Of a stretch of 64,000 nucleotides of DNA, positions 4,754 through 62,727 are shown piece by piece. The notes under the pieces were generated by a model. The model was not told the DNA's origin. It saw only the letters and a list, made by a program, of their open reading frames with translations, and searched no databases. The translations under genes were made by a program, and so were the position numbers. The DNA lies in NCBI RefSeq assembly GCF_006345805.1, contig NC_043020.1, forward strand, positions 26,784,001-26,848,000. Reading direction: 5' to 3'. How positions within the stretch are numbered: the stretch's first letter is position 1; every line of letters starts with the position of its first letter. The stretch comes from Octopus sinensis (lineage: Eukaryota).

Positions 4754-4803
<50 letters not shown>

Positions 4804-4807
<4 letters not shown>

Positions 4808-6482
4808 ATAAGTGTAAAATTAATGAATTAGTAATTAATAATTTTACCAAGCAGTGTTCAGTATGTAAAAGGACCATTTACGGTATATTTAAGCATTACT
4901 ATATAAAATTAGGGTTCACCAAAAAAAATTTACTTTACCACATACCGAGAGAAATAGCTAAATTCTTTGGCTACTATTTCTAAAAGTTCGGTGTGTGGTA
5001 AAGTAAATTTTCTTTGCTGAACCCTAATTATATAAAGTAATGTTTAAATATACTGTATGTATGTATATACACTGTGTGTGTATGAGGAGAAAGAATAGTC
5101 TTTTGGTTTTTAAATCCCCTCAAGTCGTAGTTGGACTGGGTTACAGTAGAAGACCCTGCTAAGTGTCACATAGAGGGACTGGACTCTAAACCACTGCATG
5201 GGACCTCAAGTATGTGTCCCTTTTCTTTTCACATATATCTGTTCATTCATTTTGTTTTAGGTATATTTTCCATGATAGCATGTTTTGTAGGGATACATTA
5301 TTACCAAGGCATTATTTTTATAGATGTTCTTCCTGTCCTAACCACCAACAAATTTTTTTTTTTTTATCCCATACTTCTTCGTCACCATAGAGTTAATGAG
5401 TGAATTCATTGACTGAGAACAATGACCTCATTCACAGTTTGCGGCATTCTACTTTTCCAAGTAAAATTACGGGGCATAAACATTCACACACAAAATAATA
5501 TAAGATTCTATATAACTTCTGCAGCAAAATCACATTTTAGAGTTGTCTTGTATGCTGATTGTATAAACATATTTGATTTTAAAAACTTGAAATTCTAGTC
5601 AGAAAAGTCACATACTATATATATATATATATAATATATATATAATATATATATAATAATAATAATAAGTGTAAAATTAATGAATTAGTAATTAATAATT
5701 TTACCAAGCAGTGTTCAGTATGTAAAAGGACCATTTACGGTATATTTAAGCATTACTATATAAAATTAGGGTTCACCAAAAAAAATTTACTTTACCACAT
5801 ACCAAGAGAAATAGCTAAATTCTTTGGCTACTATTTCTAAAAGTTCGGTGTGTGGTAAAGTAAATTTTCTTTGCTGAACCCTAATTATATAAAGTAATGT
5901 TTAAATATACTGTATGTATGTATGTATGTATATACACTGTGTGTGTATGAGGAGAAAGAATAGTCTTTTGGTTTTTAAATCCCCTCAAGTCGTAGTTGGA
6001 CTGGGCTACAGTAGAAGACCCTGCTAAGTGTCACATAGAGGGACTGGACTCTAAACCACTGCATGGGACCTCAAGTATGTGTCCCTTTTCTTTTCACATA
6101 TATCTGTTCATTCATTTTGTTTTAGGTATATTTTCCATGATAGCATGTTTTGTAGGGATACATTATTACCAAGGCATTATTTTTATAGATGTTCTTCCTG
6201 TCACTAACCACCAACAAATTTTTTTTTTTTTATCCCATACTTCTTCGTCACCATAGAGTTAAATGAGTGAATTCATTGACTGAGAACAATGACCTCATTC
6301 ACAGTTTGCGGCATTCTACTTTTCCAAGTAAAATTACGGGGCATAAACATTCACACACAAAATAATATAAGATTCTATATAACTTCTGCAGCAAAATCAC
6401 ATTTTAGAGTTGTCTTGTATGCTGATTGTATAAACATATTTGATTTTAAAAACTTGAAATTCTAGTCAGAAAAGTCACATAC
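4804..6482. repeat. Two near-identical tandem copies of an ~860-bp unit
   Basis: 4804-5615 versus 5661-6482, separated by a TA tract; only a handful of differences. Confidence 0.95.
4879..5057. repeat. Imperfect fold-back (second copy 5736-5914)
   Basis: ~80-bp inverted arms; homologous to the 26507 element. Confidence 0.85.
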
Positions 6483-11859: not shown

Positions 11860-12390
11860 AAGGTGCGTAGCTCAGTGGTTAGAGCGTCGGACTCAATCGT
11901 TGGCTAATGAGTTCGATTCCAGGACCGGGCTGTGTTCTTGAGCAAGATACAATTTTATGTTGTTCCGATTCAGTCCGCGATGTCACTAGTGCCAAGGTGT
12001 GTCGGTCTTTCCCGCGGGTTTTGTATGGTAAAGATGTGGATGGGGAAAATAGAGGGTGATGTACTAGCGACCCTTCCCCCTACTGTTTTACAAAGTAAAC
12101 AACAACAACACAACTAAGCAGAGGCAGCCATGGTTGAAATAAGAACAAGCATTATTGAAAGAGAAAAGAAGCAGGGTCATTCCTTTAAAGTGACCTTATC
12201 TTGTCACCCATGACTGGTTATGCATTCATAAATTAGTTTGATAGTTGAGCTCTGATTGACTGTATGCAAATGAGTTCATAACTGGGGTCCGGAACTCTCG
12301 TGGGAAAAACATTTCGCTGCCCGGTCTTGTGCCTTGGAGGGGACTTTCTAGGTCCAATTCCATGATCATTCATGACCGAAAGGGGTCTTT
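11860..12390 (+). mobile_element. tRNA-derived SINE, further family
   Basis: TAGCTCAGTGG...GAGTTCGATTCC head followed by TGTGTTCTTGAGCAAG. Confidence 0.6.
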
Positions 12391-12410: not shown

Positions 12411-12750
12411 TAGGAGTGGCTGTGTGGTAAGTAGTTTGTTTACCAACCACATGGTCCCGGGTTCACTCCCACTGCGTGGCACCTTGGGCAAGTGTCTTCT
12501 ACTATAGCCTCGGGCTAACCAAAGCCTTGTGAGTGGATTTGGTAGAGTGAGACTGTAAGAAGCCCATCGTATATATGTATGTGTGTTTGTGTGTCTGTGT
12601 TTGTCCCCCCAACATCGCTTGACAACTGATGCTGGTGTGTTTAGCAGTTCGGCAAAAGAGACCGATTGAATAAGTACTAGGCTTACAAAGAATAAGTCCC
12701 GGGGTCGAGTTGCTGAAATGACTGAAACAAGTAAAAGAGAGTAAAGAGTA
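12411..12750 (+). mobile_element. tRNA-derived SINE family 1. Other copies approx. 18526-18900(-), 20708-21113(+), 39951-40338(+), 45126-45540(+), 46316-46705(+), 48558-48968(-), 49878-50185(-), 50435-50700(-), 56470-56826(-)
   Basis: Head GGAGTGGCTGTGTGGTAAG...GGTTCAGTCCC (A/B-box-like), internal microsatellite, tail GAAACAAGTAAAAGAG; 10 or more copies. Confidence 0.85.
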
Positions 12751-18200: not shown

Positions 18201-19677
18201 GAGTTCCCCAACGAGATCACCACGCAATGTGAGAGACAGAGAGAAATTGAAAAACTTAAGAAGTGAAAAGTCGCTACACAAGACAATGTAGTACTGCAAC
18301 AACTTTGCTCATGGGTTTGCAGTGAAGTTTAAGTAACACGTAAGTGTAATAAATCTCAACTCTAGGACATCATCGCACCACAATCCATTTAACTGGAACC
18401 ATCAAAATTGTTCCAAATGTTGCGCCTCACTATCAAGGAAGAAATTTCCTAGTAAATATGCATCTTTAACATAGCCAGGGCCGCTTCGCAGTAACTCGGG
18501 TTCAAAAAGTGATTGAGCCCCAACAATTACTCTTTTCACTCTTTTACTTGTTTCAGTCATATGACTACGGCCATGCTGGGGCACCACCTTTAGTCGAGCA
18601 AATCGGCCCCAGGACTTATTCTTTGTAAGCCTAGTACTTATTCTATCGGCCTCTTTTGCCGAACCGCTAAGTGATGGGGACGTAAACACACCAGCATCGG
18701 TTGTCAAGCGATGTTGTGGGGACAAACACAAACACATACATATATATATATATATACATACATATATACGACGGGCTTCTTTCAGTTTCCGTCTACCAAA
18801 TCCACTCACAAGGCTTTGGTCAGCCCAAAGTGTCACGCAGAGGGACTGAACCCGGAACCATGTGGTTTGTAAGCAAGCTACTTACAACACAGGCACTCAT
18901 GTATGTATATATATATATATATATATATATACACGAGGAAGTGAACAGATGAATGGAAGTAGCACTCGACACACGTAGTTGGAGTAGGACTTATTGAATA
19001 ACAGGCTGAATTAGCTTCTCATGTTACTTAAAGTTTCGTGGACGTGAAAAAGCATGGTCTTCATATGTCCGAGGGCCTGCTTTTCTTTTCCGTGCACGAA
19101 ACACGTGGAGCTAAGTTAACCTGTTACGCACAAACACACACAAAACAATTTGGGCACCTCTGACAAGAACCTATTAAGTTTCGAAAATCGATTAAAGCTC
19201 TTCAATCTTTTTTTTTTTCAATATGCAGAGAAATAGATGACGCTTTCCCGATAAGTATCCTACACAAAGTCAGAATGTAACACATTTGTTGAAGCTGTAC
19301 CCATGTTCGTTATCTGGCCATGAAGCAAATATTCTTCAACAGGTTTCACAGATTGGACTACAGTGATGCTAGAACAGCATCTTGTATGATTCCTTTTTCT
19401 TTTTGCTGTCGGACATATCAGACCTTACCCTTATTTCAATACGGATAATATTTTCGATATCTATTTACCAGCGAATTAGCAGAGTCGTTTGAGCATCAGA
19501 TAGAATGATTTGTGGTGATCTGCCACAGTGCGCTTTGAGTTCGAATCTGAGTATCGATAAGCAAAGTATTTGTTAAGAACTAGGGACGATTCCTCCCTTC
19601 TCTAAGTTGGCTCCGTTACACTATGACAAGTTTATTTTCAAGGGTGGAGAAGAAAATTAAAATGTTAGCAATTTATC

Positions 19678-20068: not shown

Positions 20069-23000
20069 GTATATATATATACTTAATTTGAGTATTACAC
20101 ACACAAAAAGAAAGAAGATAACAATGGACAACTGCTTCGAAATCTCCAGTTTCTATATCCAGATTACAAATTTACTTTCAAGCCAATAACAATTGGTGTA
20201 CTTGGCTTGCTTAAGTGACACTCTTGATAAGCTTGGATTGTCAGTAAAAGAAATCAACCGACTCACACATTACAAATACAGTCTTTAAGCGGAACAGTGA
20301 AACTATGCAAGACTTTTCTCAAGATTAAAATGTGACATTGTTTTCGTTATCTATATTTTCATGATGGAACTTTGTATAATTGGTAGAAAACAGCTCCTTC
20401 CCTAAGAGGAAGGATTTAAGTAATTAAAAATGGAAGAGGAGATACATTGATATTACTGAAGCTGGAAAAACTTCGAATATTGTTACTCAGAGTTTCGCAT
20501 AACCGGTCATCAGGCAGTCGCGAGTATTCAGAAGAGTACAATAATTTGTAAGTATTCATGATTTCCAAAATCATGGAATAAACGGTGAAAGCTGATTGGG
20601 CGGCTACTTTTTAAGATGAGAGTAATTTGTTACGTAAAAGCGATTGACCGTAACGGAAAATTATATCAACATTAAGGAGAGTCAAATAAAGATTAAGAAT
20701 TAGATATGGGTGTCGGAGTGGTTGTGTGGTAAATAGCTTGCTTTCCAACCTCATGGTTCCGGGTCCAGTCCCACTGCATGGCACCTTGAGCAAGTGTCTT
20801 CTACTATAGCTTCGGGCCGACCAAAGCCTTGTGAGTGGATTTGGTAGACGGAAACTGAAAGAAGCACGTCGTATATATGTATATGTAAATATATATTTAT
20901 GTGTGTGTGTCTGTGTTTGTCCCCCTAACATCACTTGAAAACCGATGCTGATGTGTTTACGTCCCCGTAACTTAGTGGTTCGGCAAAAGACACCAATAGA
21001 ATAAGTACTAGGCTTACAAAGAATAAGTTCTGGGGTCGATTTGCTCGACTAAAGGCGGTGCTCCTGCATGGCCGCAGTCAAATGACTGAAACAAGTAAAA
21101 GGAGTAAAAGAGTATATAAATCGGATGGTGGAAATCGTAGGTACAAATAGGAAAATACAAAGAACAAGATAGACTTAGCCACACGTGAGATGTTGTGAGT
21201 TAATAAAATAGGAAAGAGAATGAAGTAAGAATTAGAAAATTAAAATAAGGGTGAATGAATATCACAGAAAAAATGAGATAGATAAATAAATATGAAGTGA
21301 GGGGGAACCCGCTATGAGGAGGAATGGAAGAGGAAAAAATGTTACTAGAGAAAGAAGAAAGAAAAGAGAAAATAGAGGTGAATGGGAAAATATAGCAAGT
21401 TTGAAGTACGGTTTTTTATAATGAAGTTAAGGCGGTGGTTGTTGCTTATATCTTATTCTGTGTGAAATATAATCAGTGCGTGTGTTTATTATTGGCCTAA
21501 TGACCCTCCCAAGATACAAAAAAAAATGTTCCAACACAGAATTTCAAATCGAGAATCTTACAAACCAAATACAAAATCCAAATTAAAGCTTTCTATCATA
21601 ATTGCGAGTCAGTTTATATCCTAATCCCCAGCTTAATAATGACAGTTATTTTGCAAAATTCTTCCTTGTTTTCAAGATTGGAATCATCGATGAGATTTAA
21701 GACACCCAGGAGAAAGAAACCCAGCTGACTGATTGGTTGACAGATGGATTGATCAGACAATCGATTAACTAAAATGTTAAATGGTTAATATGCTTAATAA
21801 TAACAATAAACGAAGTGAAAAAGAGCCAGTGCGTGTGTACATTACTGGCATAATGGCCCTCCCTAATACAATAAAATATGTTTCAACACTATTAGAGAGA
21901 GAGAGAGAGAGCTGAAGTAGAGAGAGTATGACATAAATGAGGTCACAAATGACGACGAAAAGTTTGATGGATCGATTTAATCAAACAATCAATCAGTTAA
22001 TTGGCTAAATGATTAACCAATTGAACAATAATAACTATAATAATGATAATAAAAGAACTGAAATATAATCTGTGCGTGTGTTTATTTTTGGCATACTGAC
22101 CCTCCCAATATACAACACTTGTTTCAACACGATCTCATTCCAAGAAACTTTGCAAAGGAATTACAAAAACAAAATATTTTCAGATCAATAATTAGTTTTT
22201 GGTTTTGTCAATAAGAATAGTAAATCAAATCACGTGAGATTTGACAAAGAACATCAACATAAAAGTCCAGTTAAAACAAGAAATTATCTTTCATAGGACT
22301 GCGGCCATGCCGGAGCAGCTCATTGAAGGGTTTCGTCGAACAACGCAACCCCAACACTCGATTTTATTATTAGTGTTTGGCCGAACCGTTAAGTTACGTG
22401 GACGTAAACAAACAAACTCAAGTCACCAAACGATGGTGAGGAACAACACAAAGACACACACGTATATGTATACGACAAGCTTCCGCACAGTTTCCACCTA
22501 CCAAATTCGCTCACAAGACATTAGACAGCCTGAGGTTTATTGCAGAACATATTTGCTCAAGGTTGGCACGTCGCGTGACTTTTAGATGCCCCCTGCAACT
22601 TTTTGCTTTGTGGCCCCCATCCCTTCAACCAAAATGCATAATCTATGCATCTTTTATTCATAGCTATATTTTACTTTATTCTATCTGAAGTTCAATATTT
22701 CACGTTATCTTAAAGAACATCTTTAAAAGTTACATATCTGGAAGTAAAACTTCCAGATATGTGAGTAATAAGGACCAGAGTATAAAAAGCCTATTTGAAT
22801 AGGTACGATGTAAATAATTTTACAAGAACTTTTGTAGGTATAATGTATTACCATTTTATTTGAAATTTTAAGTTAATATAGTTTAGTTCTTTTTCAACAT
22901 AACCAAAGTAAGTTGATGCCTCATCTACGCGCTTTGATTTTAACATGGGGCTCCTCAACCACGGATGCCCCCTCTGACCGCAGGGGTTGCAGGGGCTTAG

Positions 23001-25135: not shown

Positions 25136-26475
25136 TTAAGATGCTGACAAAACAACAGACAACTTTTAAAATAGAAAAAAAAGGACAAAAATCAAAACAG
25201 AATTTCAAAATAAAGAAAAGGATAAACGTGGACAGAAAAACCACTCCATGGTCAATATCGAGCAAAACTCGACAGGTTACAAGTAAACCAACATAAAAGT
25301 CGAAAACGCATACTCTACATTATCAACCACTAACACACACATGGATATGCATATGCGGTATTTGATGGCATATACCACGTTTTTATTTTCCCCACAGAAA
25401 TCTCAAATTGTCAACATCGTCAGCGTATCGGACGAAGTGCTTAACGGAATTTAATTGCTCTCGATACGTTCTGAGTAACGAGCTTGACTTTACCTTTTAT
25501 CCTTACGCGATCGATAAAAATAAGTACCAGTTTTGTACTGGAGTGTTAATGCAATCCCCTTGCTACCTCCTCTCTAAAATTGCTAGCCACGTGCCAAGAT
25601 CATTATTATCATCATCATCATCATTAGTAGTAGTGGTGGTGGTATTTTATTTATCACAAGTACTAGGGTCGATTTGTTAGTCCAAAAATTCTTCAAAGCG
25701 GTGGTGGTGATATATAAATTCTTCAAAGCGGTGGTGGTGATATATATATATATATGTATAGTTCAAATAGAGGTTACAAACCTCATTACGCGATAGTAAA
25801 ATCCAATGAAGGCGCTGTTTTATACCATGTTCTTTATGCATATTTAGGCTCTATATACGAAGTTGAGCCTATGTTACATGATTTACGCATTAAAATATTT
25901 TTCTTCAATCTTTGCTGCTAAAGTAGCCTCGTCTTTTACTTTTGTAGAAGAGCATATGCTCGAAATGTAAACGACTTTTTCTTCTAGAGTATAAACCTAA
26001 TATACTTCGTTTTATCTCATCTTCCTTCAATCTTGCTTCCAAACCACATGGTTCCGGGTTCAGTTCCACTGCGTGGCACCTTCGTCAGATGTGTCTTCTG
26101 CTATAGCCTCGGGTCGACCAAAGCCTTGTAAGTGGATTTGGTAGACGGAAATTAAAAGAAGCCCGTCGTATATATGTATGCATTTATGTGTGTGAGTCTG
26201 TGTTTGTTCCCTCGCCATCACTTGACAACCGTGGATTATTTTTATGCGTGCGTGCACCCATATTGAAATAGGTGTGTGTGAGAAGATACGATTATACATG
26301 CGCACGCATATATACATAAATACAAGCATACATTTATGGTAATAAATGTAAGTTCATATGCGTATGTATACATAGGTATGCACGTGAATTTATATATATA
26401 GACTCACACAAACGTATGTGTGTACATACACGTGTTTATGTATAATTTACACACATGTATGTGTACACCTACATA

Positions 26476-33170: not shown

Positions 33171-33307
33171 TTCATATATTTTTTTCTCTTTTTTTTGCCT
33201 ATTACGAATGATGAGCTGAAAGCCGAAACTTTCAGTTGTGCTAGAGAAAACCCGGGTAAACGAGAAAAAAATAGACAAGTAATTAGGCAGATAGATAGAT
33301 AGATGGT

Positions 33308-33351
<44 letters not shown>

Positions 33352-33381
33352 CAGATAGACAGATAGACGGATAGATAGACA

Positions 33382-33481
33382 NNNNNNNNNNNNNNNNNNN
33401 NNNNNNNNNNNNNNNNNNNNNNNNNNNNNNNNNNNNNNNNNNNNNNNNNNNNNNNNNNNNNNNNNNNNNNNNNNNNNNNNN
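33382..33481. other. Assembly gap (100 N)
   Basis: N run beside a (GATA)n tract. The true gap must be longer than 100 nt if the rest of the exon lies inside it. Confidence 0.99.
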
Positions 33482-33575
33482 AGCGTTTGTCTTCTGCTAC
33501 ATTGTGTTGTTCGATAGTGTGTTTCTCTTTTACCTGAAGATCGTGAGTGGCGTGAGATTTGGCGTCCTCGATTAA
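33482..33575 (-). CDS. CFAP45-like paralog, 5' part of exon equivalent to exon 5, cut by the assembly gap
   Basis: ttttgcag|TTA ATC GAG GAC GCC AAA TCT CAC GCC; LIEDAKSHATHDLQVKEK versus VIQEAKCHAIRDAQLEEK, 11/31 identical. Confidence 0.85.
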
Positions 33576-33595
33576 CTGCAAAACGAGACAAAATA

Positions 33596-33903
33596 TCTTT
33601 ATATATAAAATTGAAGTTGTGTGTGTGAGACTCTGTCTCCTACGATTTAGATTCATAACTACTCCCACATTTTGCGGTGCAGTTTAATCAAAAGCGGGTA
33701 TCTTATAGTCGTCATTCATATCGAGCCCTTCTGGGTATTGGCACGCGTCTACGATGAGTCTGCGATTTAAAAAAAAATTACCATCATTTTTCCGCATTTT
33801 TAATGATTTTTGCTCAGGAAAGTAATAAGGGAAGTAACACTCTAAAAATGCTTATATAGTTATTTCCCTTATAAACCCGAGCAACGCCGGGCGATACTGC
33901 TAG
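33596..33903 (+). mobile_element. Non-autonomous Helitron, family A
   Basis: A^TC start, subterminal hairpin cccgagcaacgccggg, CTAG^T end. Confidence 0.85.
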
Positions 33904-34294
33904 TTTTTTAAAAAAAGAAAAAAATTATTCTTTTCTTTATATTGTTTCAGTCATCTTGACTGTGGCCATACTGGAGCACCGCCTTTAGTCAAACAAATGT
34001 GGTGTAAGACGTCTGCTTAGTGATGGTTGACCAAACAGTTAAATAACAGCAACAACACCTGCTACTGCTGTGGCTGCTGCTGCTGCTGCTGCTGCTGCTA
34101 CTACTGCTACTACTACTACTACTACTATAGTAATCAAAAAATATTCAAAAGAGTCAAAAATAGTCATCAACACCCAATAATATCATCAGACAATTACTGT
34201 GATTCAATCAATCACCAAAACAAAATCCCCGCTTATATGACGGTGACGCTCATTTACAAGTGTCACACGGTGTCAGGACAGGAACACACACACA

Positions 34295-34340
<46 letters not shown>

Positions 34341-34597
34341 ACCCACACATACTCACATTGACGCACACGCACTGACACACACTGACACACACATACACTG
34401 ACACACACATACACTGACACACGCATACACTGACACACATACACTGACATACACTGACACACACACAAACACACTAATACACACACTTACACGCACACAC
34501 ACACACATACTGTCTCTCTCTCTCTCACCCACACATACTCACATTGACGCACACACACTGACACTGACACACACTGACACTGACACACACATACACT

Positions 34598-34630
<33 letters not shown>

Positions 34631-34737
34631 ACACGCACACACACTGACACACACACAGAAACACTAACCACGCACACACGCACATACATACACACAAATA
34701 CATATATACAGTAAAAGGCAAAATGGCTTCCGCTCAC

Positions 34738-34893
34738 CTCATTGAAGATTTTGATTTCCATGTCTCTTTCAAAAATTCTTTGATTAGCTTCAGCCAATAT
34801 GGAACTCGCCTTATTTTCACTGACATCCCCCAAGTCGTAGTCTGTCTTGATCTGACATTTCTGCAAGTGTTTCTTTCGCTCCGCAACCCCGGA
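34738..34893 (-). CDS. CFAP45-like paralog, exon equivalent to exon 4
   Basis: taattag|TCC GGG...AAT GAG|gtgagc; SGVAERKKHLQ...ILAEANQR...IKIFNE; phase 0->0. Confidence 0.82.
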
Positions 34894-35090
34894 CTAATTA
34901 ACAAAGATTGAATTAAAGTAAATCAAATTAAATTAGATCAATTACACACACACACACACACACACGCACTTATATATATACTATTTTTTCTACTGTTTTT
35001 TCTTCATTTGTATTGCTTTTACATCCTGTTCTTGTCACTTGTTTTACCCCTCTGCAAAAGAATTTTACTTAATTCCTTTTGCAGGAAGGA

Positions 35091-35167
35091 CTGCTTCGGC
35101 CTGGCCGTGTTCTGCCCTTACCTTCGAAACACGCATTGAGTCGAACCAGGGGCAGCTGATGAAGGGG
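35091..35167 (+). ncRNA. Rearranged hammerhead-like RNA, copy 1
   Basis: CGTGT-T-ctgccctt-a-ccttc-GAAACACG...aggggcag-CTGATGA-agggg. Confidence 0.55.
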
Positions 35168-35322
35168 AATTTTCCTTGTATTGTTTGTCCTGTACTCTGT
35201 TTTTTCGTTGTTTAAAAAAGTCCGTTTCCTTGTTTTTTCGTTGTTAAAAAAAGTCCGTTTGCTTGTTTGATTTTATGTTTTCGTTTCTCGTTGTGTTCTA
35301 CGTTTATTTGTGGTGTCCTGTA

Positions 35323-35378
<56 letters not shown>

Positions 35379-35478
35379 GCATGTATATATGCATGTAGAT
35401 GTAAGTATGTACACATATGTAAGTATGTACACATATGTATGTATATATGCATATATTTTATATATTTATTATATCGTT

Positions 35479-35523
<45 letters not shown>

Positions 35524-35672
35524 ATGTATGTATAGAAGAAAATGGATATAGTAACAATGGGAAACTCGTGGTTTACGCTGGTATTAAATAGGTAACAAAG
35601 GAGCGACTCTGGAATAATTATCTCTTGAGGTATTAAACCCCTCTAAATTGATACCTAGATAGATAGATAGAT

Positions 35673-35723
<51 letters not shown>

Positions 35724-35896
35724 TTAAAAACGGTAAGATAACAAAAGAAAGAAAGAGACCTCAATATTATGTAAATAGAGGAATTTATCTGTAAAATAAT
35801 ATGTGACAATTATTCGGTAGCCAAGATAAAATATATATATTTCAAAATGTATCACATGTGGATCGTCCTTTTCTTTTGGACTTTCCTCCGTCTCCT

Positions 35897-35931
35897 GTTT
35901 CTGACGAAGAGCTTTGCTCGAAACGTAAAAC
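35897..35931 (+). ncRNA. Minimal type I hammerhead ribozyme, intact core
   Basis: gttt CTGACGA a GAGC ttt GCTC GAAAC GT A aaac. Confidence 0.7.
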
Positions 35932-36109
35932 CACCTTTCTCTCCTGCTAATACTTTGCATCTACCACATCCTCACGTTGTTGTTTTTTCTTGTTTGTTCT
36001 TCGTTTTTTTTGGGTGGGGGATTTACTATATATATTTATATACTGTATATTTTTTTAGTTTCAATCCGAGGACTGCGGCCATGCTGGGGCACCACCGTTT
36101 GCTTTGCTA

Positions 36110-36290
36110 CACTTTCACTGAACCTCCTCTGATATGTGGAATTTGGTAAATGAGGGAGTTTGACGTTGCTACCCTCATCTGTGTTTCTTGCCTTGGGGTA
36201 GAGCTCGTCTGGAATTCTAGACAGAAGACGGTCCAGTTTTGTTTTGAAAATGCCTGTGCAGGTCTCTGAGGCTTTGTGGAAGGATATTGA
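36110..36290 (-). mobile_element. CR1/L2-like LINE C-terminal remnant
   Basis: FKTKLDRLLSRIPD motif. Confidence 0.55.
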
Positions 36291-36419
36291 AAATATGTGT
36301 GTGGGTATGTGCGCATCTGTGAATGTGCGTGTGCGTGCATGTGTGTGTATGTGCTTTCGTGTGTGTGTGTATGTGCTTTCGTGTGCTTGCGTGTGTGTGT
36401 GTTGTGAAATCAATCTCAC

Positions 36420-36561
36420 CAGCTTCTGTTCTTGCTCTTTCACCAGCCTCTCCCCTTCGGCCTTCAGTTTTTCGGCCATGTTCCTACTGTTCTCCTTGAT
36501 TCGCTCATATTCCGCGCAGTCCAGAGTGATAGCAGGACGTTCAACATGTTGTCTAGGAATA
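36420..36561 (-). CDS. CFAP45-like paralog, exon equivalent to exon 3
   Basis: attcag|T ATT CCT...AAG CTG|gtgaga; same phases (2->0) as copy 1; IPRQHVERPAITLDCAEYERIKENSR. Confidence 0.8.
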
Positions 36562-39244: not shown

Positions 39245-40872
39245 AGAAGAAGAATAGTCTAATGATTCTTTCTACTAAAGGAATGAGACCGGAAATTTTA
39301 GGATAGAGAGGCTAGTCGATTACACCGACCCTAGTATTTGACTGGTACTTTATTTTGTCGCCCTAGAAACGCGTTAAGGCCAAATTGATCTCGGCGGAAC
39401 TTGAACGCAGGGCGCAACATCGATAGTATAAGACAATAACAAAACAAAATATGAAATAAATAACTAAATAAATAAATAAAAGGCTTACATCATATCCCGA
39501 ATGTAATTATTGCTAATTAAGCGAATCATCTCCCTCTGTTGTTTTTTTCTTTTTTTCTTGCCCATTTGTTCTAACATTTTGAGAGAAAAAACGGTTTCAC
39601 ACCTCTGGCGACGACCTGGGTTTAAAAGATGATTACTTCAGTTCAGAATGGAATGGTACAATGAAAAGAATCCCACCGGTGGTTTTATTTAATTTTCGGT
39701 TTCTTTTACATTCTTCCAATACTTCTTGACTCTGATCTTGTTTGTTTTTCTTCGTTTATATAAATATTTGTATGTATGTATATATATTCGTATATGTATA
39801 CATATATGTATATATACATATATTGTATGATTCTACTAGCGATATCTTTCTTTGTTCGTCATAGCTCTGTACAAAAAAAAATAAAGAGAAGAAACAAAAG
39901 AATTTTAAAACCGCAAAAAAGATAATCCTGAATAAAGAGTCTATATTCATAGGCGCAGGAGTGTCTGTGTGGTAAGTAGCTTGCTTACGAACCACATGGT
40001 TCCGGGTTCAGTCCCACTGCGGGCCACCTTGGGCAAAGTGTCTTCTACTATAGCCTCGGGTCGACCAAAGCCTTGTGAGTGGATTTGGTAGACGGAAACT
40101 GAAAAGAAGCCCGTCGTATATATGTATATATATGTATGTGTATATGTTTGTGTGTCTGTGTTTGTCCCCCCAACATCGCTTGACAACCGATGCTGGTGTG
40201 TTTACGTGCCCGTAACTTAGTGGTTCGGAAAACGAGATCGATAGAATAAGTACTAGGCTTACAAAGAATAAGTCCTGGGGTCGATTTGCTCGACTAAAAG
40301 GTGGTGCTCCAGCATGGCCACAGTCAAATGACTGAAACAAGTAAAAGAGTAAAAGAGTATATATATAGGCACAGGTGTGGCCGTGTGGTAAGAAGCTCGC
40401 TTCACATGGTTCCGGGCTCCGTGGCAGCTTGGGCGAGTATCTTTTACAATAACCTCGGACTGACCAAAGCGTTGTGATTGGTGCCCTTTTCAAGCAATAC
40501 TATAATAATTCTTTGTAAAATAAGCAAAAGGACTGAAATTTGGGATAGGAGCAGGGGTGGGTAGCCGATTACATCAACCTCGATCTATGAATCCCGAAAG
40601 AATGAAAGGCAAAGTCGACCTAAGTGGAATTCGAACTCTGAATGTAAAGAAACGGGGGAAAATTAAATTAAGTTAAGCATTTTGTCTGACGCACTAACGA
40701 TTCTGCCAGCAAGATTTCGCCTTTTTATAATTTCTAGTTTAGGCTCAATGGGAGCAAATTGATGGGAAAGAGTTGTTAGTTGATATCACCGACCCCGGCA
40801 TTCCACTGGAAATTTATTCTGAATTGAAGGCAAAGCCGACATCCGGAATTGGAAACCAGAATGACGGAAGTG

Positions 40873-43045: not shown

Positions 43046-43440
43046 TCATTGTTCGACCGTGGTCGAGACAATGGAATTTACCATGCTACACCAGACCTCA
43101 CGGTCAATCATAGCATTACAGAGGTCCTGTTGCTGGATGCCTGTATCCCTGGAGATTACATCAGGGTAGGAGAGCGTGCGCCCTCTGGTATCGCAAGTAG
43201 ATGGCTTCCAGAGAAGAGTAGAAATTACCTCGTTTTCAGCTCTACAACAATGTCCAGCAAACTGGACTCTCCTACCCTTCACAAGAGATGACACAGGTGG
43301 TAATTTCCCATATATTTGCATTTTAGTTGGATGGCGCCTCCACGAGAGATTTTGAGCTCTCATAAGGAGGCGAGTGTAGGTTCCATCCAACCGCCTCTCA
43401 AGCTTCTTTGATAACGTCCAGGTTTCTGAACCATATAGTA
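43046..43440 (-). mobile_element. RTE-like LINE ORF2 C-terminal remnant
   Basis: RRVQFAGHCCR...LLWKP...RGR...YPDVI...AMIDREVW; (GAT)n-type tail. Confidence 0.7.
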
Positions 43441-44583
43441 GAATTGGTTCGACTGTGGCTTTGAAGATTTTAAGTTTGAAATCTCTACTTAAATTGATGA
43501 CCAGATTTTATGCATATCATTACTTACACATGCATACACATACAAACACACACACACGCATATACACACAGACACACATACCCATACACACACGAGAACA
43601 ATGAATGCTTTCTGAGTAATTGAGAGTGAATTTGGTAGATGGAAACTATGCGGAAGCCCATCATATATATGTGTGTGTGTGCAGGAGTCTGTATGTGTAT
43701 GCGTGTGTGTGTGGAAATATGCATGAGCGTCTGTATGTATGTATATATATGTATGTTTGTGTGTGTGTGTGTGCGCGTGTGTGTATATATGTGTGTGAGT
43801 ATATTTATATGTGTATGTGTGTGTGTGTGTGTTTGTCCCCCAACTACTTGACAACCGTTTGTCCTTGTTTGTCCCCTCTATGTTTAGCCCCTTGTGGGTT
43901 GTAAAGAAATAGGTATTTCCTTCCATGATAATGCTTTCCAAACATCTGCTTCCTCGAAAATAACCATAAAAGATGAGATTTTGTTCTTTAATAGTGTTCA
44001 GGTGTTGTCATGTTTCACCTATTTGTTGTAACGCCCATTCATTCGTCCGATGGTTCTTGTTAGAGACTCGTAACAATCTCCTAATCGCCCACATTCCAAA
44101 CGCATTCATTATGTTCTCTTCAAATTTTCTCAGACTCCATGCTTTGCAGCCAATTTCTTTATTTTTTACCAATTTCTCTATTTAGTAAGTTGTGGCGAAA
44201 GAGTCAGCAGAAGTTCGCCATTACCTTCTACTGGAGCCGCGTGGAGCTTAGGTGTTTCGCTCCTAAAAACACACACACATCGCCCGGTCTGAGATTCGAA
44301 CCCGCGATCCCTCGACCACGAGTCCGCTGCTCTAACCACTAAACCAAACACCTTATTGACCAAATGAGCGCTCGTACTAGGCTTGTTTTAAACTTAGTTG
44401 GGACACGGTATATAATAAAGAGGGTTTGTATAAATTTATTACTCGTATAGTAAGCTTCGAAATTCTTACATTCCCGCGCTTTTCTGTAATTCAAACCGCC
44501 TCATGGTCCCAGCAGACAAAATGGAAAAGGCGTTGCTTCGGAGGATATCTTCTAATTAAATGGCCTTACATTTATAACCATAA

Positions 44584-44879: not shown

Positions 44880-45289
44880 TTTCTTGCATTTCTCTTTACC
44901 GAACCTCTTTATCTTTGATAATGTTTTTTTTCTTTTTCTATTAATCGACAAACCTTTTGTTATGCTTTACTTCTGCCTTTTGTTTACGTATTGTTCTTTT
45001 CATCTTTATTTTTCTTTTTAATTTTATTTTTGTTATTCGTCCTTGAAGGCACTATATATTTGTGTCGTCCTTTTGCATAATCGCTATAATAGATGGTTTG
45101 GCAATTATCTAAAACAAAATGGATACAGACAGGAGTGGCTGTGTGGTAAGTAGCTTGTTTACCAACCACATGGTTCCGGGTTCAGTCCCACTGCGTGGCA
45201 CCTTGGGCAAGTGTCTTCTACTATAGCCTCGGACCGGCCAAGCCTTGTGAGTGGATTTGGTAGACGGAAACTGAAAGAAGCCCGTCGTA

Positions 45290-45345
<56 letters not shown>

Positions 45346-46844
45346 TGTGTGTGTTTGTGTATCTATGTTTGTCCCCTGAGCATTGCTTGACAATCGATGC
45401 TGGTGTGTTTATGTCCCCGTTACTTAGCGGCTCGGCAAAAGAGACCGAAAGAATAAGTCCCGGGGTCGAGTTGCTCGACTAAAGGCGGTGCTCCAGCATG
45501 GCCGCAGTCAAATGACTGAAACAAGTAAAAGAGTAAAAGAGTGTAAAGAGAGACAAATAACTAACGCAAATCCCGGTACTCATTTGAAACCGGATCATCT
45601 TATTTAATGCCCCCCGCCCCTCCGTTACAGCAAGACATGTTTCTGCCTCTGTCTCTCTGTCTCACTAACCGTTCATCCTCTGACACAAGTTCCCCTCTTC
45701 AAATGCCCCTTCCCCTCTCATAATTCCTCGCTTTACGAGTTATTCGGTGACCGTACCAGTGCTGCTCTCACGTAAAAAGCATCCAGTCCACACTATAAAG
45801 TGGTTGGCATTTGGAAGGGCATCCAGCTGTAAAAAATCATGCCGAAACTAACCTCGCCTGTGCTAACGCCACGTAAAAAACCACTGAGTCCACTCTGCAG
45901 AGTGGTTGGTGTTAGGAAGGGCAGAATCGTTAACACGCCAGGTGAAATGCTTAGCAGTATTTCGTCCGCCGCTACGTTCTGAGTTCAAATTCCGCCGAGG
46001 TCAACTTTGCCTTTCGCTCTTTCATGGGAAAATAAAATAAGTACCAGCTGAACACTGGGGTCGATGTAATCGACTTAACCCCTTCCCCCAAAACTACTTC
46101 TCTTGTGGCAAAATTTGAAACCATTATTATTTATTATTATAATTATCATTATTATTCATAATAATAATTTCTAACATGATCAGAAAAGGAGATGGAAGAG
46201 AAAGCTGACGATTGGCCATATTTGAACTCAAAACCTCTATATGACCAAGTATCACATTACCGATTCTTGCAGCTCTACTGTAATTAACACCAAATAATAA
46301 ATGATATAAGCACGTAGGTGCAGGAGTGGCTGTGTGGTAGGTAGCTTGTTTACCAACCACATGGTTCCGGGTTCAGTCCCACTGCGTGGCACCTTGGGCA
46401 AGTGTCTTCTACTATAGCCTCGGGCCGACCAAAGCCTTGTGAGTGGATTTGGTAGACGGAAACTGAAAGAAGCCCGTCGTGTATATATATGTATATGTAT
46501 GTTTGTGTGTCTGTGTTTGTCCCCCTAGCATTGCTTGACAACCGATGCTGGTGTGTTTATGTCCCCGTTACTTAGCGGTTTGGCAAAAGAGACCGATAGA
46601 ATAAGTACTGGGCTTACAAAAGAATAAGTCCCGGGGTCGAGTTGCTCGATCAAAGGCGGTGCTCTAGCATGGCCGCAGTCAAAATGACTAAAACAAGTAA
46701 AAAAAAAAGAAGAGAAAGAGAGATGTCTCTGCGGTAAATTTGGAAAATTCTATGGAGAGGGGTTTTATTAGGGGTGGATAGGAATAGTACCAGGTTTCGC
46801 GAGGGAATGGCATGTTTGTACTGACTTCATTGGGTCTTTATAAT

Positions 46845-48548: not shown

Positions 48549-50096
48549 TCTTTTTTTGTCTTTTTACTTGTTTCAGTCATTTGACTGCGGCCATGCTGGA
48601 GCACCGCCTTTAGTCGAGCAAATGGACCCAGGGACTTATTCTTTGTAAGCCCAGTACTTATTCTATCGGTCTCTTTAGCCGAACCGCTAAGTGACGGGGA
48701 CGTAAACACACCAGCATCGGTTGTCAAGCAATGCTAGGGGACAAACACAGACACACAAACACATACACACACGCATACACATATATATATACATACATAT
48801 ATACGACAGGCTTCTTTCAGTTTCCTTCTACCAAATCCACTCACAAGGCATTGGTCGGCCCGGGGCTATAGCAGAAGACACTTGCCCAAGATGCCACGCA
48901 GTGGGACTGAACCCGGAACCATGTGGTTGGTTAGCAAGCTACTTTTACCACACAGCCACTCCTACGCCTATGTTTAACATTATGAAAATACCTCACAACA
49001 CAACAACTTTACTATGCGATATACAAACGGAATGGATCCTTGCAGTCTTACAGAGTAAAATAAAGTTTAGTAAAATCAGAACAAGGCACTAAATCTGAAT
49101 ACTGTGCAGAAATATCCATACATTTCACAGCCTTCTTTGTGTGTGCGTGTGCTACTGAGTGGTGGTGAGGTGTGCACATGTGCACGTAGGAAAATATGTT
49201 TTTTGACATGAGTTACATAACCGGTTTCACAGTTTTCATGACTTTCAAAATTAGTGAAGTATGGAGAACCATGAAGCTAAACTGTATTTGCCTGAAAGAA
49301 ATTTAGGTGGGTATTTATTACATATTGTTAGTGTGTAACAGTTCTTTATATCTAATTGACAGTGTAAGCTATCAAAGTAAGCACGCTGCCTGAGTTTATG
49401 CACAAACATCTATCTGAAACAACTGTCATATCGCCCTCATAAAACATATATCGCAAAATAGCTTTTAAAAGAAAATCAATAATATAGTCCTGGATATCCA
49501 ATGTCTGGAGAACGTCTCTGGACAAAGATCTGTAAGCTAAGCGCTAATCTCTTTAATTTACGATTTATCGGAGGAAGGCAGTCAGTACTTATAAATAACA
49601 TTTCGCCGGATCTCTGAGACTGACGGGGGAGAGGGAAGGAAGGAAGGCTTCGTTTCATGAACTGTCAGCACTGCTACGATCACCGAATAACTCGTAAAGC
49701 GAGGAATTATGAGAAGGAAAGGGGCACTTGAGGTGGGGAACTTGTGTCAGAGGATGAACGGTTAGTGGGACAGAGAGACAGAGGCAGAACCATGTCTTGC
49801 TGTAACGGGGGGGGGGCATTAAATGAGATGATCCGGTATCAAATGAGTACCGGGATTAGCGTTATTTGTTTGTCTCTCTTTACTCTCTTTTACTTGTTTC
49901 AGTCATTTGACTGCGGCCATGCTGGAGCACCGCCTTTAATCGAGCAACTCGACCCCGGTACTTATTCTTTTGTAAGCCCAGTACTTATTCTATCGGTCTC
50001 TTTTGCCGAACCGCTAAGTGACAGAGACGTAAGCACACCAGCATCGGTTGTCAAGCAATGCTAGGGGGACAAACACAGATACACAAACACACACGC

Positions 50097-55200: not shown

Positions 55201-57085
55201 CAGACAGGCAACTCCGACACAACAGTCATAGACATCCCACGGACCCACCTTTTTTTAATCTCTCTTTGTTCCCTCTAGTTTCCTAACATACTCTGGTCCC
55301 TATTTCAAGTCCCTTAACAAATTCCCTTCAACCGCCCGGAAACCCCGTTTCTTACCCTCAACGCAATCTGCTTCTCTTTCTTCTTCAATGCGATCTCTTC
55401 ATCCTCTTTAAACATCTGCTCAATCTCTTTCTTCAGTTTCTCCGTTTCCCGTTCCTTCGCTTCGATTTGCCTCAACTTCCGCTCCTCCATTTCCGTTATC
55501 TGTTCGCGCAGTTTCACGGCGCCCAAACGCAGCTCCTGCTTGCGCCGATTCTCGATTTCCTCCTGGACCCTGATGGCGTTCTTTCGATCGATCTCCATCA
55601 TTTCGTCCAATCGCATTTCCTCAGAGGCGACGTCATGCTTCATCTGTTTCTTCTCTTCCAGCTGAGCGTCTCTGATCGCGTGGCACTTCGCTTCCTGAAT
55701 CACCTGCAATGTAAGATTTCATACATATAAATATAAATATATATATATGTGTATGTATGTATGTATGTATGTATATAGGATAAATGTAAAAAAAACATCA
55801 ACTGGGACAAGAACGCAAAGCATTTAGAAGACGATACAAAAAAACGGACGGGACATTCGAAGCCTTCGATTTTCAGTCAAGAACCGGATCATCTTCGCAA
55901 TTTCGGCTGATTAATTTTGAGATTGCTCCGACCTGGCCAGCCCCAAAGGAAAATCTAAGCCAAGCGCCTTAGATTCCTTGGAAGAAAGCCTCGAATGTAT
56001 ACAAAACAAGGACGGGAACGAATAAGAATACAAAAATACGTAAAAATAATAATGATAACACGAATAAGAATACGAAAATACGTAAAAACAATAATGATAA
56101 TAATAATAAGAAAAACAGGACGTTACAGACAGGTGTCTTTTCGACAGGACAGGTGTCTTTTCGACAGGACAGGTGTTTTTCGACAGGACAGGTGTCTTTT
56201 CGACAGGACGGGTGAACTTGAGCAGGTGCATTGAAAAATTGCCTAAAGGCGAAGAGAGAAATAGAATGTGTGTCTGGCCTAGACGGCTGTTGATTACGAA
56301 AAGGCAGGACAGCAGTCCAAAAGTTAGTCACGTGTGATAAGAGCGGAACAGAGGAAGAGAGAAAAAAAGGGAACAAGGAACAAAGGAGGAGGAGGGGAGA
56401 GAGAGAGAGAGAAAGAGACGGGTCAAAGTGGAGTGCAAAGTGTGAAAGGCAGAGAAATGTAGGATATACTCTTTCTTTTACTCTCTTTTACTTGTTTCAG
56501 TCATTTGACTGCGGCCATGCTGGAGCACCGCCTTTAGTCGAGAAAATCGACCCCGGGACTTATTCTTTCTAAGCCCAGTACTTATTCTATCGGTCTCTTT
56601 TTGCCGAACCGCTAGGTGACGGGGACGTAAACACACCAGCATAGGGGTACAAACACAGACACACAAACATATACACATACACACACATATATATATACGA
56701 CAGGCTTCTTTCAGTTTCCGTCTACCAAATCCACTCACAGGGCATTGGTCGGCCTGGGGCTATAGCAGAAGACACTTGCCCAAGATGCCACGCAGTGGGA
56801 CTGAACTCGGAACCATGTGGTTGGTAAACTTTTTTATACTTGTTGGTTAGTTATTTAAATAAAAAAATTAAAGTTTAAAAATTAAAAAATTAAAAATATA
56901 AATTTAAAAATTAAAAAATGTTAATAGTTTAAATTCTAAAATTTTATATGTATGTAATATAATTTTTCTAAATCTTCAGATTTTTCAATATGCTAGGCCA
57001 CTGGTTTTAAATTGATATTAATCAAATAAATATTCAATTTTTCACCCTTATTATATAAATATTCGTGGATGTATATATATTCTAG

Positions 57086-59024: not shown

Positions 59025-60687
59025 ATGAGGAGGAGGAGGGTAGGCACATCGACTTCCAACACTACAACAACAGAAAGCGATTCCGAACTGGGGGACGTCA
59101 AAGAGAACTCCACAAAACCATTGAAGGTCACTAATATATGTCCGTCACTAACACCCACACAAACGCTGGCGCTCTACCGACTCTATTCCTTGCAACACCT
59201 TATGACGGCGCTAAAAGCAGATAAAAAGAATTACCAGTGCAGCTTCTTTTCTCTCTCTGTACTCCTCTCGCATCATGGACCTTTCTTCTTCACTTAGAAC
59301 TCTGGCCCTCTGTTTTATCCTCGTGAAATCATGTCGGTCTAAGACGACAGGGCAACCCATCGAGTTCTTTTGCGGCACCCTGAAAGACAAGTTACATATA
59401 TACACACATTTTATCATATCTTTTATCTTCTACTTGTTTCAGATATTACCTTAGGGCAGTGGTTCCCAAACTATGAGTCGCGACCCACAGATGGGTCGCG
59501 AACGGAATCTTAGTGGGTCGCAAAAAGTTATAAAATTACGCATTAGCTTTGATTAACTGCTATCTATCGAGATAGTTCAAGACTTATGTTTTCAATACCA
59601 GACTTGTTTTGTCAAGCAGTGGGCTTTTTCACGAACTTAACAAATCAGAGGTTGTCATTTTCTCAAGTTATTTATTTGTACGTCATCGTAAAAAGGAAAG
59701 GTCTGTTTTTACCTATTCATAGAGAACTTTAACTAGGCGAAGTATAACACTGATCGAGTCGATAACAGTTACTACTTCAAGGTTTTGTACTAGTGTTAGT
59801 ATTTACATATAGGGTATAGATACGTTGAAACAGTTATAAAACGTTTTGTTTCACATTTAATATAAATAGCAAAAAATTTAAATAAATAAAACATTATGGA
59901 TTTCACTAGTAAGTTTATAAATTATTTAAAAAGTATAGGAGTTAAGTGGGTCGTCATAAACTGGTGTGATAAATAGTGGGTCGCGACTCTAAAAAGTTTG
60001 GGAACCACTGCCTTAGGGATTTTTTAGCCGAACAACAACCATGTCCACCATTACTACCACCGCCTCTACTGCTTTTACTACTACCAATTCAATCACCACT
60101 GTTACCATATATTTACCACACTACTAGCACCATCACAACAACCACAACCATGAACAACACTAACACCCTAACTATATTACCACCAAATCGCTTAGTACTT
60201 CTATCACAACCACCACAACAACAACAACTACCACAGCAACCACCACCAACAGCAACACCGAGCTATCATACCATCTCCACCATCACCACCACCACAATCT
60301 CCACCATCACCACCACCACCACAATCTCCACCATCACCACCACCACCACCACCACCACCACCACCACCACCATCTCCACCACCACCACCACCACCATCAC
60401 AATCTCCACCACCACCACCACCACCACTACGTCACATTATCGACCGTTATAAATATTCCTTTTGACCCGCTCTAATTAATACCTTCGTTAATTAATTACA
60501 GGAGAGGAGGCAACGAAACGGAAATAGACAACTTCGACCGTCTGCCATCTGCCTGTCTGCCTGCCTGCCTGTCTGCCTGCCTGCCTGCTGCCTGCCTGCC
60601 TGCCTGTCTGTCTGTCAGCCTGCCAGTTTGCCTTTCTATCTGTTTGTTAGTCTGTTCCGTTTGTCTGTATGTCCATTGAATATTTAG

Positions 60688-60722
<35 letters not shown>

Positions 60723-62727
60723 TGCCTATGTATGTATGTGTGTGTATAAGTCTGTGCTTGTGCATGTATGTGCTTGTCTGGTTAACCCTATCCTTGTCTC
60801 CTTAAATACATCTGTCCTTGGCCCCTTGGCCCCTTGCCTCTCTGGCCTTTCTACCTGGCTGTAGCTGTCTCCCTCTGTCTTTCTATCTGCCAGTCAATAT
60901 CTGCCTTGTTCATTTTTCTCATTTTCTCTTCTTGTCTCTCCTTGTCCCCTTGGTTGCCGATGTTTATACGTCCATCTCTGTTCTCCCCACCTGTATTTAT
61001 TTACCTGTCTCCTTGAATCTGCCTTTGTCCCTTCTCAATCTTTCCTATCTGTCCCTGTCCTCTTGGTTGCCGATGTTTGTACGTCCATCTCTACTCTCCC
61101 CATTTGTCTATTTCTTTACTTGCCGCCTTGTATCAGTGCTCAAATGGAATTTATTTTATCGACCTCGAAAGGATGAAAGGCTAAGTCAACCCCGGCAAGA
61201 TTTGAACTCAAAACGTAAAGACAGACCAAATGCCACTAAGCATTTTGTCCAGAGTGCTAACGATTCTGCCATCTCGCTGCTTCACTAATAATAATTAGTT
61301 AAAATGACCGTCTGCATAGACGAAAAGGGCCAATTATAATAATAATTGAAGGGACATTAAGAGCATTAACAAACAGGTTTAAGAAATTGAGATTGACCTG
61401 AGAGTAGAAGAATATGCTCAGAAAACTGCTTTATTGGGGACAGAGAGGATCTTGTGGTTGGTACCTGGGTTTTAGGTATCGTGGAAAGGGACTCTGTGAG
61501 ATCTTTGACAACAGGTTGCTGTCTGCTCTCACAGATTTAACCAGAACAAGTAAAATCGGGAGCTGAGAAGTGAAATGGAAATAATAGAGACAGCTGTAGT
61601 AAAAAAAAAAGTTTCAAATTTTGGCACAGGACCAGTTTTTGAGTCAATTACATGGACTTGACTGATCCTTATTTCATCGACCGATTCCAAAAAGGATGAA
61701 AAGGGCAGAGTCGACTTCGGTGGATTTTGAACTCAGAACGTAAAGATAGACAAAATGCTGCAAAGCATAACAAGGCCAACAACAACAACAGCAACAATGC
61801 AGCATGAACGGTTGCGAAAGGTTTATGGTGAAAGAGGAGAAAAGCTCAATCGCATCGAGGAACGACAGTTGACTCGCCAAGAACAAATCACGTTTAGCAG
61901 ATTGCAAAGCGGCCACCATCCGGATTTGAGAAGCTGGCAGCACAAGATTGGAAGAATTGAGGACCCTATTTGCCGCAATTGCAAAATGGGTGAAGAAACA
62001 GGAGAAGACGTGATGTTGGAGTGCCCAGCTATCCATCCGTCGATCCGCGGTCAGCTGACGGACCCCGAGGCGATTGCGAAGGAGCCCAGACTGGCACTCA
62101 AGGTGTGGGAGAGATGGCTGAGGGTGGTGGAGGAGCAGGTGGTGATTGAGGAGCAGCAGTAACCAACTATCCAGCCAAGAGTTACTAAACAACAACATCA
62201 ACAACAACAAAATGGCACTTAACGAAAACAATGTCACAGTCAACAAACAAGAGTAGGGTACATAACTCACTTTAGATTTCTTATCAAATCCATCATTATC
62301 ACTTGTACATTCTCTTTGCCTTTCTGCTCGGCTTTTGTAGGCGGGTAGACATCTTTGATTTGGCTGAATCTCTGAGTCTGACGTCCTCCAGGCGCCGTCT
62401 TTGGGATATTCCAACCGTGGCATTTCTCACCAAACAGCGACTCGTCAACTTGAGAGTGATAGCTAATTGTACGATATTGACGATAGCGTCCTCTTTTTGA
62501 CGAACCAGAGCCGCTGCTGGATCGCGTTCGGGCGCTGATTGGCTGCGAATGGAGAGTGAAATGAGACTGTAAGATTGTGTGGTGTTCATGCCTCTTTTTG
62601 TCTTTCTCATTCAAGTAGTGATATTACTAGAATAACAACCAAATTTGCTAGAAACAGCAGTCATATTTCCCTCCTTCTCTCTCCCTCTCTCTATCTATCT
62701 ATCTATATATCTATCTCTCTCTTCCAC

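Follow-up and report, generated by a model that had tools for sequence, protein, structure and literature searches.

Background

Motile cilia and sperm tails contain CFAP45 (CCDC19; FAP45 in Chlamydomonas), a structural protein that is deeply conserved. We report on a stretch of 64,000 nucleotides of Octopus sinensis (contig NC_043020.1, positions 26,784,001 to 26,848,000; hereafter the window, with coordinates counted from its first letter), in which a complete CFAP45 gene (the canonical gene) is followed on the same strand by what is likely a second, divergent CFAP45 gene (the paralog). The window is eukaryotic, AT-rich and rich in repeats.

The closest described system is CFAP45 itself, which forms long helical filaments with a 48-nm periodicity at protofilaments B07-B09 of the B-tubule and is present there in two copies, which differ in the conformation of their N-terminal helices so as to accommodate CFAP52 (PMC10663601). 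The TPH-domain inner protein CFAP210 (CCDC173) lies beside CFAP45 in the B-tubule (PMC10663601). It shows by precedent that a helical TPH protein resembling CFAP45 can occupy a neighbouring, non-identical site of the lumen; however, the octopod paralog has no CFAP210 match and descends from CFAP45 itself.

The likeness to CFAP45 concerns the end-to-end homology of the orthologue from Argonauta hians, its TPH domain, the exon-intron layout shared with the canonical neighbour, and the length from the start to the "IP" motif, which in the Argonauta paralog agrees within ~7 residues over ~460. The differences concern the first ~65-75 residues, including the YR(T/V)..S.VDE(S/T)LFG motif of canonical animal CFAP45, which the paralog does not have; the hallmark motifs, which are altered (AKCHAIRDAQ to AKSHATHDLQ or AKSHAVKGIQ, and GIPDKY to DIPRRF); and the C-terminal tail, which is longer in the Argonauta paralog. 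The family is well known, and the paralog is a lineage-specific addition to it. Automated annotation already contains it, but the literature does not describe it; a literature search found no paper linking CFAP45 with cephalopods or octopus.

Results

Exons of the paralog

We consider it likely, from the exon structure and cross-species comparison given below, that the window holds four exons, the 5' half of a genuine, selectively retained and divergent second CFAP45 gene, which is cut in exon 5 by an assembly gap. The features of the locus are as follows.

39577-39489, minus strand: first coding exon, 89 nucleotides, ATG at 39577-39575, encodes MLEQMGKKKRKKQQREMIRLISNNYIRDM; located by tblastn of XP_036368990.1
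36561-36420, minus strand: homologue of exon 3 (P3), 142 nucleotides, encodes IPRQHVERPAITLDCAEYERIKENSRNMAEKLKAEGERLVKEQEQKL; acceptor ...attattattcag, donor gtgaga
34893-34738, minus strand: homologue of exon 4 (P4), 156 nucleotides, encodes SGVAERKKHLQKCQIK...RDMEIKIFNE; acceptor ...gttaattag, donor gtgagc
33575-33482, minus strand: first part of the homologue of exon 5 (P5), 94 nucleotides, encodes LIEDAKSHATHDLQVKEKHTIEQHNVAEDKR...; acceptor ...gttttgcag
33382-33481, no strand: assembly gap of 100 N, the sole gap in the window, interrupting exon 5 of the paralog
33290-33381: (GATA)n microsatellite, abutting the far side of the gap

The first-pass annotation of this DNA had proposed a tandem paralog from three exons that repeat the order, strand, phases and sizes of exons 3-5 of the complete gene, and splicing proved this description exact. 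The sizes in the paralog and the canonical gene are 142/145 nucleotides for exon 3 and 156/171 for exon 4. The phase at junctions 2/3, 3/4 and 4/5 is that of the canonical gene: exon 3 begins with one codon-completing base, and junctions 3/4 and 4/5 are in phase 0 in both copies. P3, P4 and P5 each have a polypyrimidine/AG acceptor, P3 and P4 have GTGAG donors, and P5 is in frame, open and homologous right to the final base preceding the gap. The paralog stands head-to-tail with canonical CFAP45, 8.8 kb downstream, so the tandem arrangement holds as well.

The same annotation had found neither the first exons nor exons 6-9. The former are now represented by the first coding exon at 39577-39489; the remainder of exon 5 (5b) and exons 6-9 are indeed absent from the window. 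The first coding exon has the donor gtaagc, matches the phase of canonical exon 2 and is homologous to its 3' end (the last ~20 codons; REMIRLISNNYIRDM vs ENVQVIMMDLIRNLK). An in-frame stop codon lies 60 nucleotides upstream of the ATG, and tblastn found no homologue of canonical residues 1-75 upstream of 39577.

The spliced product of 160 residues is 31% identical to the canonical protein over 148 colinear residues (BLASTP with composition adjustment, E=1e-11), the alignment covering canonical residues 76-222. By exon, the identity is 19-40% (19% in exon 3 and 37% in exon 4), in agreement with the low identity estimated earlier by eye. Not one of 20,000 shuffled versions of the 480-nucleotide coding sequence stayed open, and the probability of finding no stop in 160 codons under the intron base composition is ~5e-6; the open frame is therefore not a matter of chance.

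Family assignment

A 130-residue peptide from the window, compared with the sequences of solved structures, matched only CFAP45 chains (five, E from 6e-8 to 4e-5, colinear over residues ~98-225). These chains come from doublet-microtubule structures (7rro, 7ung, 8i7r, 8snb and others), mammalian and sea-urchin only. In the same set, CFAP53, CFAP210, MNS1 and TCHP gave no match at E<=10 with the window peptide or at E<=0.01 with the Argonauta protein; such structures of sperm doublets include models of these other TPH/coiled-coil doublet proteins (PMC10663601). The 130-residue fragment has no Pfam match; most of the TPH domain is encoded by exons 5-8, beyond the gap.

In the Argonauta orthologue, TPH (PF13868) is found with 154 bits (cut-off 27) over profile positions 3-342 of 352. 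Residues 4-465 of this 494-residue protein align with CFAP45 residues 66-534 (best E=4e-49), and all ten of its PDB matches are CFAP45/FAP45 (mammals, sea urchin, Tetrahymena, Chlamydomonas). The assignment to the CFAP45 family made at first sight is thus supported both by the window peptide and by end-to-end alignment of the orthologue with CFAP45/FAP45 of ten species. The N-terminal segment of animal CFAP45 (~70 residues, motif YRT..S.VDESLFG) is absent from the paralog in both Octopus and Argonauta. As far as the alignments go, this shortening marks the paralog as a variant of CFAP45, not a typical member.

Orthologues in other octopods

Of 34 matches in a filter-free HMMER scan of 1.84 billion representative proteins, 32 are canonical CFAP45s that resemble the octopus canonical copy more than they do the paralog. 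The exceptions are GAB1609218.1 (Argonauta hians, 421 residues), which is 56% identical over exons 4-5 and continues into an entire CFAP45-like C-terminal half, and UniProt A0A0L8G182 (O. bimaculoides). A profile search of a set of 5.8 billion sequences gave no more paralog members. A word-indexed protein database missed even the canonical CFAP45 of O. sinensis despite its gene call, so absences there are weak evidence.

At 28.9 kb and without gaps, the Argonauta locus (L002) contains a homologue of every exon from 2 to 9, with canonical splice sites:

L002 2764-2831: exon 2, with an ATG start, MPFRRKGREVYRLVGSNHIRDI, and a stop before it; homologous in place to the Octopus start
L002 5471-5612: exon 3, 142 nucleotides, the same length as P3 of O. 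sinensis; 62% identical
L002 9992-10144: exon 4, 153 nucleotides, 59% identical to P4; conserved ...taattag acceptor
L002 from 12203: exon 5, 348 nucleotides, the same length as canonical exon 5
L002 to 18887: exons 6-9, with canonical splice sites

Exon 8 has 225 nucleotides in both the Argonauta paralog and the canonical gene. Past the point at which the gap interrupts the O. sinensis copy, exon 5 of O. bimaculoides (P0039) and Argonauta reads ...KRLRKLM(E/Q)DDCEVNLKYQDN.... The assembled Argonauta gene is nine-exon-like and gives the 494-residue product, nearly all of it helical. Judged by these exons, the Argonauta paralog is a complete CFAP45-type gene in which only the N-terminal ~70 residues are missing, and the truncated start is common to the Octopus and Argonauta copies.

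Nucleotide BLAST between the Octopus and Argonauta loci aligns no exon, the silent sites being too diverged; the alignment consists only of a short interspersed nuclear element (SINE)-like repeat, present in three copies in L002, and a low-complexity stretch of 41 nucleotides. The conserved feature is therefore the protein.

Selection and rate

Over 149 aligned codons, the proportions of non-synonymous (pN) and synonymous (pS) differences between Octopus and Argonauta are 0.28 and 0.91, and their ratio of 0.31 (bootstrap 0.23-0.41) is to be read as a rough, upper-bound style value. Mismatches at codon positions 1/2/3 amount to 0.36/0.21/0.65, which fits coding constraint. In this comparison the paralog appears as a protein-coding gene that is under purifying selection. 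The earlier description of a retained copy agrees with the orthologues in O. bimaculoides and Argonauta hians and with the conserved exon sizes, splice sites and start, as well as with this ratio. Identity between the paralog and any canonical CFAP45 is ~26-37%, vs 41-48% for the octopus canonical protein and its closest invertebrate copies; hence we agree that the paralog is the fast-evolving copy.

Existing gene models

The locus is not unannotated: NCBI already names it "CFAP45-like". In a protein search, the spliced peptide had one match of 100% identity, the O. sinensis RefSeq entry XP_036368990.1 (192 residues). It is encoded at ~26.8 Mb of chromosome CM016882.1 (GCA_006345805.1), where the next gene upstream is the 549-residue TPH product. 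The terminal exon of this model is the following.

27119-27015, minus strand: terminal exon of XP_036368990.1, encodes LNRLQPFTPHAGIEHLSGISLTTSDEIRLSNNF and a stop

The model splices to this exon from 33484-33483, where a GC "donor" borders the gap. The exon has neither a Pfam match nor similarity to CFAP45, and nothing in the Argonauta orthologue, which ends in a CFAP45-like C-terminus, corresponds to it; the true exon 5 continues (...EDKR-) as the orthologues do (...EEKRLRKLM...). For these reasons we regard the terminal exon as probably lying outside the conserved gene, as an artefact of annotation or, at most, a minor isoform.

The O. bimaculoides entry A0A0L8G182, named CFAP45, is a chimera in which canonical exons 2-6 are joined to the complete exon 5 of the paralog, after which it reads through into an intron. 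Its canonical part is ~90% identical to the canonical gene of the window; its paralog exon 5 is 84% identical to the 31 residues available in the window and 71% to Argonauta. To judge by this composition, the entry shows that the tandem pair is present in O. bimaculoides too. The Argonauta model GAB1609218.1 lacks exons 2-3, which we found at L002 2764-2831 and 5471-5612. Compared with the exons described above, all three public models are defective: that of O. sinensis is truncated with a non-homologous tail, that of O. bimaculoides is chimeric, and that of Argonauta is partial. The practical outcome is that three public gene models are wrong and that the gap at 33382-33481 conceals part of a real gene.

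Discussion

The proposed reading has to be set against several observations that weigh against it. No homologue of exons 5b-9 was found in the 64-kb window, including 33 kb past the gap, by tblastn with canonical and Argonauta probes; at very permissive settings, the canonical protein matched only the canonical gene's own exons, and nothing below 33382. The O. bimaculoides model likewise ends just past exon 5. Synonymous divergence is saturated (pS 0.91-0.96) and the GC content at third codon positions is 0.50 vs 0.78, which precludes a proper omega or a duplication date; in addition, pN/pS averages over both lineages, Octopus and Argonauta. Finally, the neighbour-joining placement of the paralog as sister to the octopus canonical copy falls from a bootstrap of 82% (14 taxa) to ~52% (22 taxa), with signs of long-branch attraction, the alternatives to it being other long branches.

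The first two of these points bear on how the O. sinensis copy ends. The copy might be truncated or decaying in Octopus, having lost its 3' half (the rest of exon 5 to exon 9) and coding for a product of at most ~190 residues or heading for a pseudogene, with Argonauta intact. We find this unlikely, but it stays alive because both Octopus models, which are independent, stop at or just after exon 5; the NCBI model splices to a non-homologous terminal exon, and the 33 kb past the gap hold no downstream exons. Against this, no stop interrupts the four exons present and their splice sites are intact, homology extends to the last base before the gap, as an assembly break predicts and a deletion does not, and exon 5 of O. 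bimaculoides is complete and 71% identical to Argonauta. The contig after the gap opens in a microsatellite, and such a start is typical of contig ends. Since exon 5 is homologous to the last pre-gap base, the next contig starts in (GATA)n and O. bimaculoides has the whole exon, an assembly break rather than biological truncation is the probable end of the O. sinensis copy.

It is also conceivable, though improbable, that there is no independent gene and that the exon block serves as alternative exons of the canonical CFAP45 unit through read-through or chimeric transcripts. The block lies on the same strand, just 8.8 kb downstream, the phases are compatible, and A0A0L8G182 is such a fusion (canonical exon 6 to paralog exon 5). 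However, the first exon begins with an ATG after an in-frame stop at a position conserved between Octopus and Argonauta, canonical CFAP45 ends in a terminal exon and stop of its own, NCBI calls two genes, Argonauta has no canonical exon in the 2.7 kb upstream of the paralog start, and a fusion would repeat one protein segment within one product. We give next to no credence to an origin of the exons in another coiled-coil/TPH family (CFAP53, CFAP210, MNS1, TCHP) or in low complexity: the protein is charged and helical, and the 130-residue fragment alone has no Pfam match, but the PDB matches are to CFAP45 only, although the set includes those other doublet proteins, and the matches are colinear, the intron positions identical and the E-value of 1e-11 adjusted for composition. 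An assembly artefact (an uncollapsed haplotype or a misjoined duplicate contig) is as good as dismissed, too. It might be suggested by the gap within the locus; however, it is excluded by the divergence of the copies (31% amino acid identity, no nucleotide-level similarity), and the same diverged copy occurs in the assemblies of two other species.

Thus, we return to a real second gene interrupted by the assembly. Concerning its age, the Octopus-Argonauta divergence is a firm lower bound, given the orthologues; the word "ancient" in the first-pass annotation holds back to that split and is shown only that far. Our best guess, which is not secure, is that the tandem duplication is cephalopod- or mollusc-specific.

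We presume the following course of events. CFAP45 would have been duplicated in tandem no later than in the common ancestor of Octopus and Argonauta. The paralog would have lost, or never had, the first ~70 residues, so that translation begins just before the conserved V/I-R-L/V-I...IRD segment; it has since diverged to about 30% identity with canonical CFAP45s, its coding function being kept by purifying selection. In the O. sinensis assembly, a scaffold gap cuts exon 5, and exons 6-9 should exist in the real genome. The gap inside exon 5 would account both for these missing exons and for the 192-residue model with a non-homologous tail.

On the most economical reading, the product would still be a filamentous microtubule inner protein that lines the lumen of the B-tubule in axonemal doublets. 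With the helical TPH body and the length kept, and the N-terminus and hallmark motifs changed, its N-terminal contacts would be altered. Probably it would serve as a variant specific to a tissue or a position, either confined to some cell type, in line with the possible specialisation for sperm versus cilia put forward in the first-pass annotation, or placed at one of the two CFAP45 positions, which are not equivalent. In mammals, the two copies of the single CFAP45 lie on neighbouring protofilaments, and the bend of the N-terminus around CFAP52 is all that distinguishes them. By analogy, one may speculate, with considerable doubt, that octopod doublets are built with two CFAP45 proteins, the N-terminally truncated, fast-evolving paralog occupying one non-equivalent site or replacing the canonical protein in the unusual sperm flagellum of octopods; if true, such doublets would be a natural subfunctionalisation of a microtubule inner protein. 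More generally, a maintained, strongly diverged, N-terminally shortened octopod duplicate would be a natural experiment on the dispensable parts of a microtubule inner protein, and would also show how inner proteins become adapted to different cell types or places in the lattice.

Canonical gene and other features

The canonical CFAP45 gene, parent or sister of the paralog, was spliced by hand at AG/GT sites into 548 residues and a stop. Its exon 1 was not located. NCBI has a gene call at this locus with a TPH-domain product of 549 residues, and exon 5 alone gives Pfam TPH with E=8e-22.

62542-48415, minus strand: canonical CFAP45, consisting of the exons below
62542-62271, minus strand: exon 2 (C2)
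59379-59235, minus strand: exon 3 (C3), 145 nucleotides
58063-57893, minus strand: exon 4 (C4), 171 nucleotides
55703-55356, minus strand: exon 5 (C5), 348 nucleotides
53225-53118, minus strand: exon 6 (C6)
51629-51322, minus strand: exon 7 (C7)
51209-50985, minus strand: exon 8 (C8)
48484-48415, minus strand: exon 9 (C9)

Canonical intron 2-3 contains a low-complexity stretch of ACC/CAC-type triplets (60000-60470), which reads as poly-T/H/P when translated. Short frames at 61731-62159 (plus strand), 43403-43492 (minus) and 44011-44181 (minus), situated inside and downstream of canonical CFAP45, resemble by eye the tails of open reading frame 2 (ORF2) of retrotransposons without long terminal repeats; those at 61731-62159 and 44011-44181 have no Pfam match.

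In the Argonauta locus, the acceptor and first ~40 nucleotides of exon 5 have undergone an abortive local duplication (L002 11987-12040 vs 12200-12253) in a CT-rich microsatellite. Repeat-prone surroundings of exon 5 may underlie the breaks of the Octopus assemblies there. The downstream "gene" of this locus is a tandem-repeat open reading frame, and a tblastx comparison of the Argonauta flanks with the window for synteny was swamped by interspersed repeats.

The interspersed SINE-like repeat, ~300 bp long, has at least 12 copies in the window with 72-90% identity (those in L002 being related copies), among them the following.

39950-40250, 46315-46605, 20715-21005, 48657-48970 and 45130-45457: copies of the SINE-like repeat
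18637-18901, 12412-12643, 56581-56827 and 26032-26231, plus others: further copies of the SINE-like repeat

A tandem direct repeat of ~750 bp (4759-5500 and 5616-6367) has 97.7% identity between its units and an inverted segment inside.

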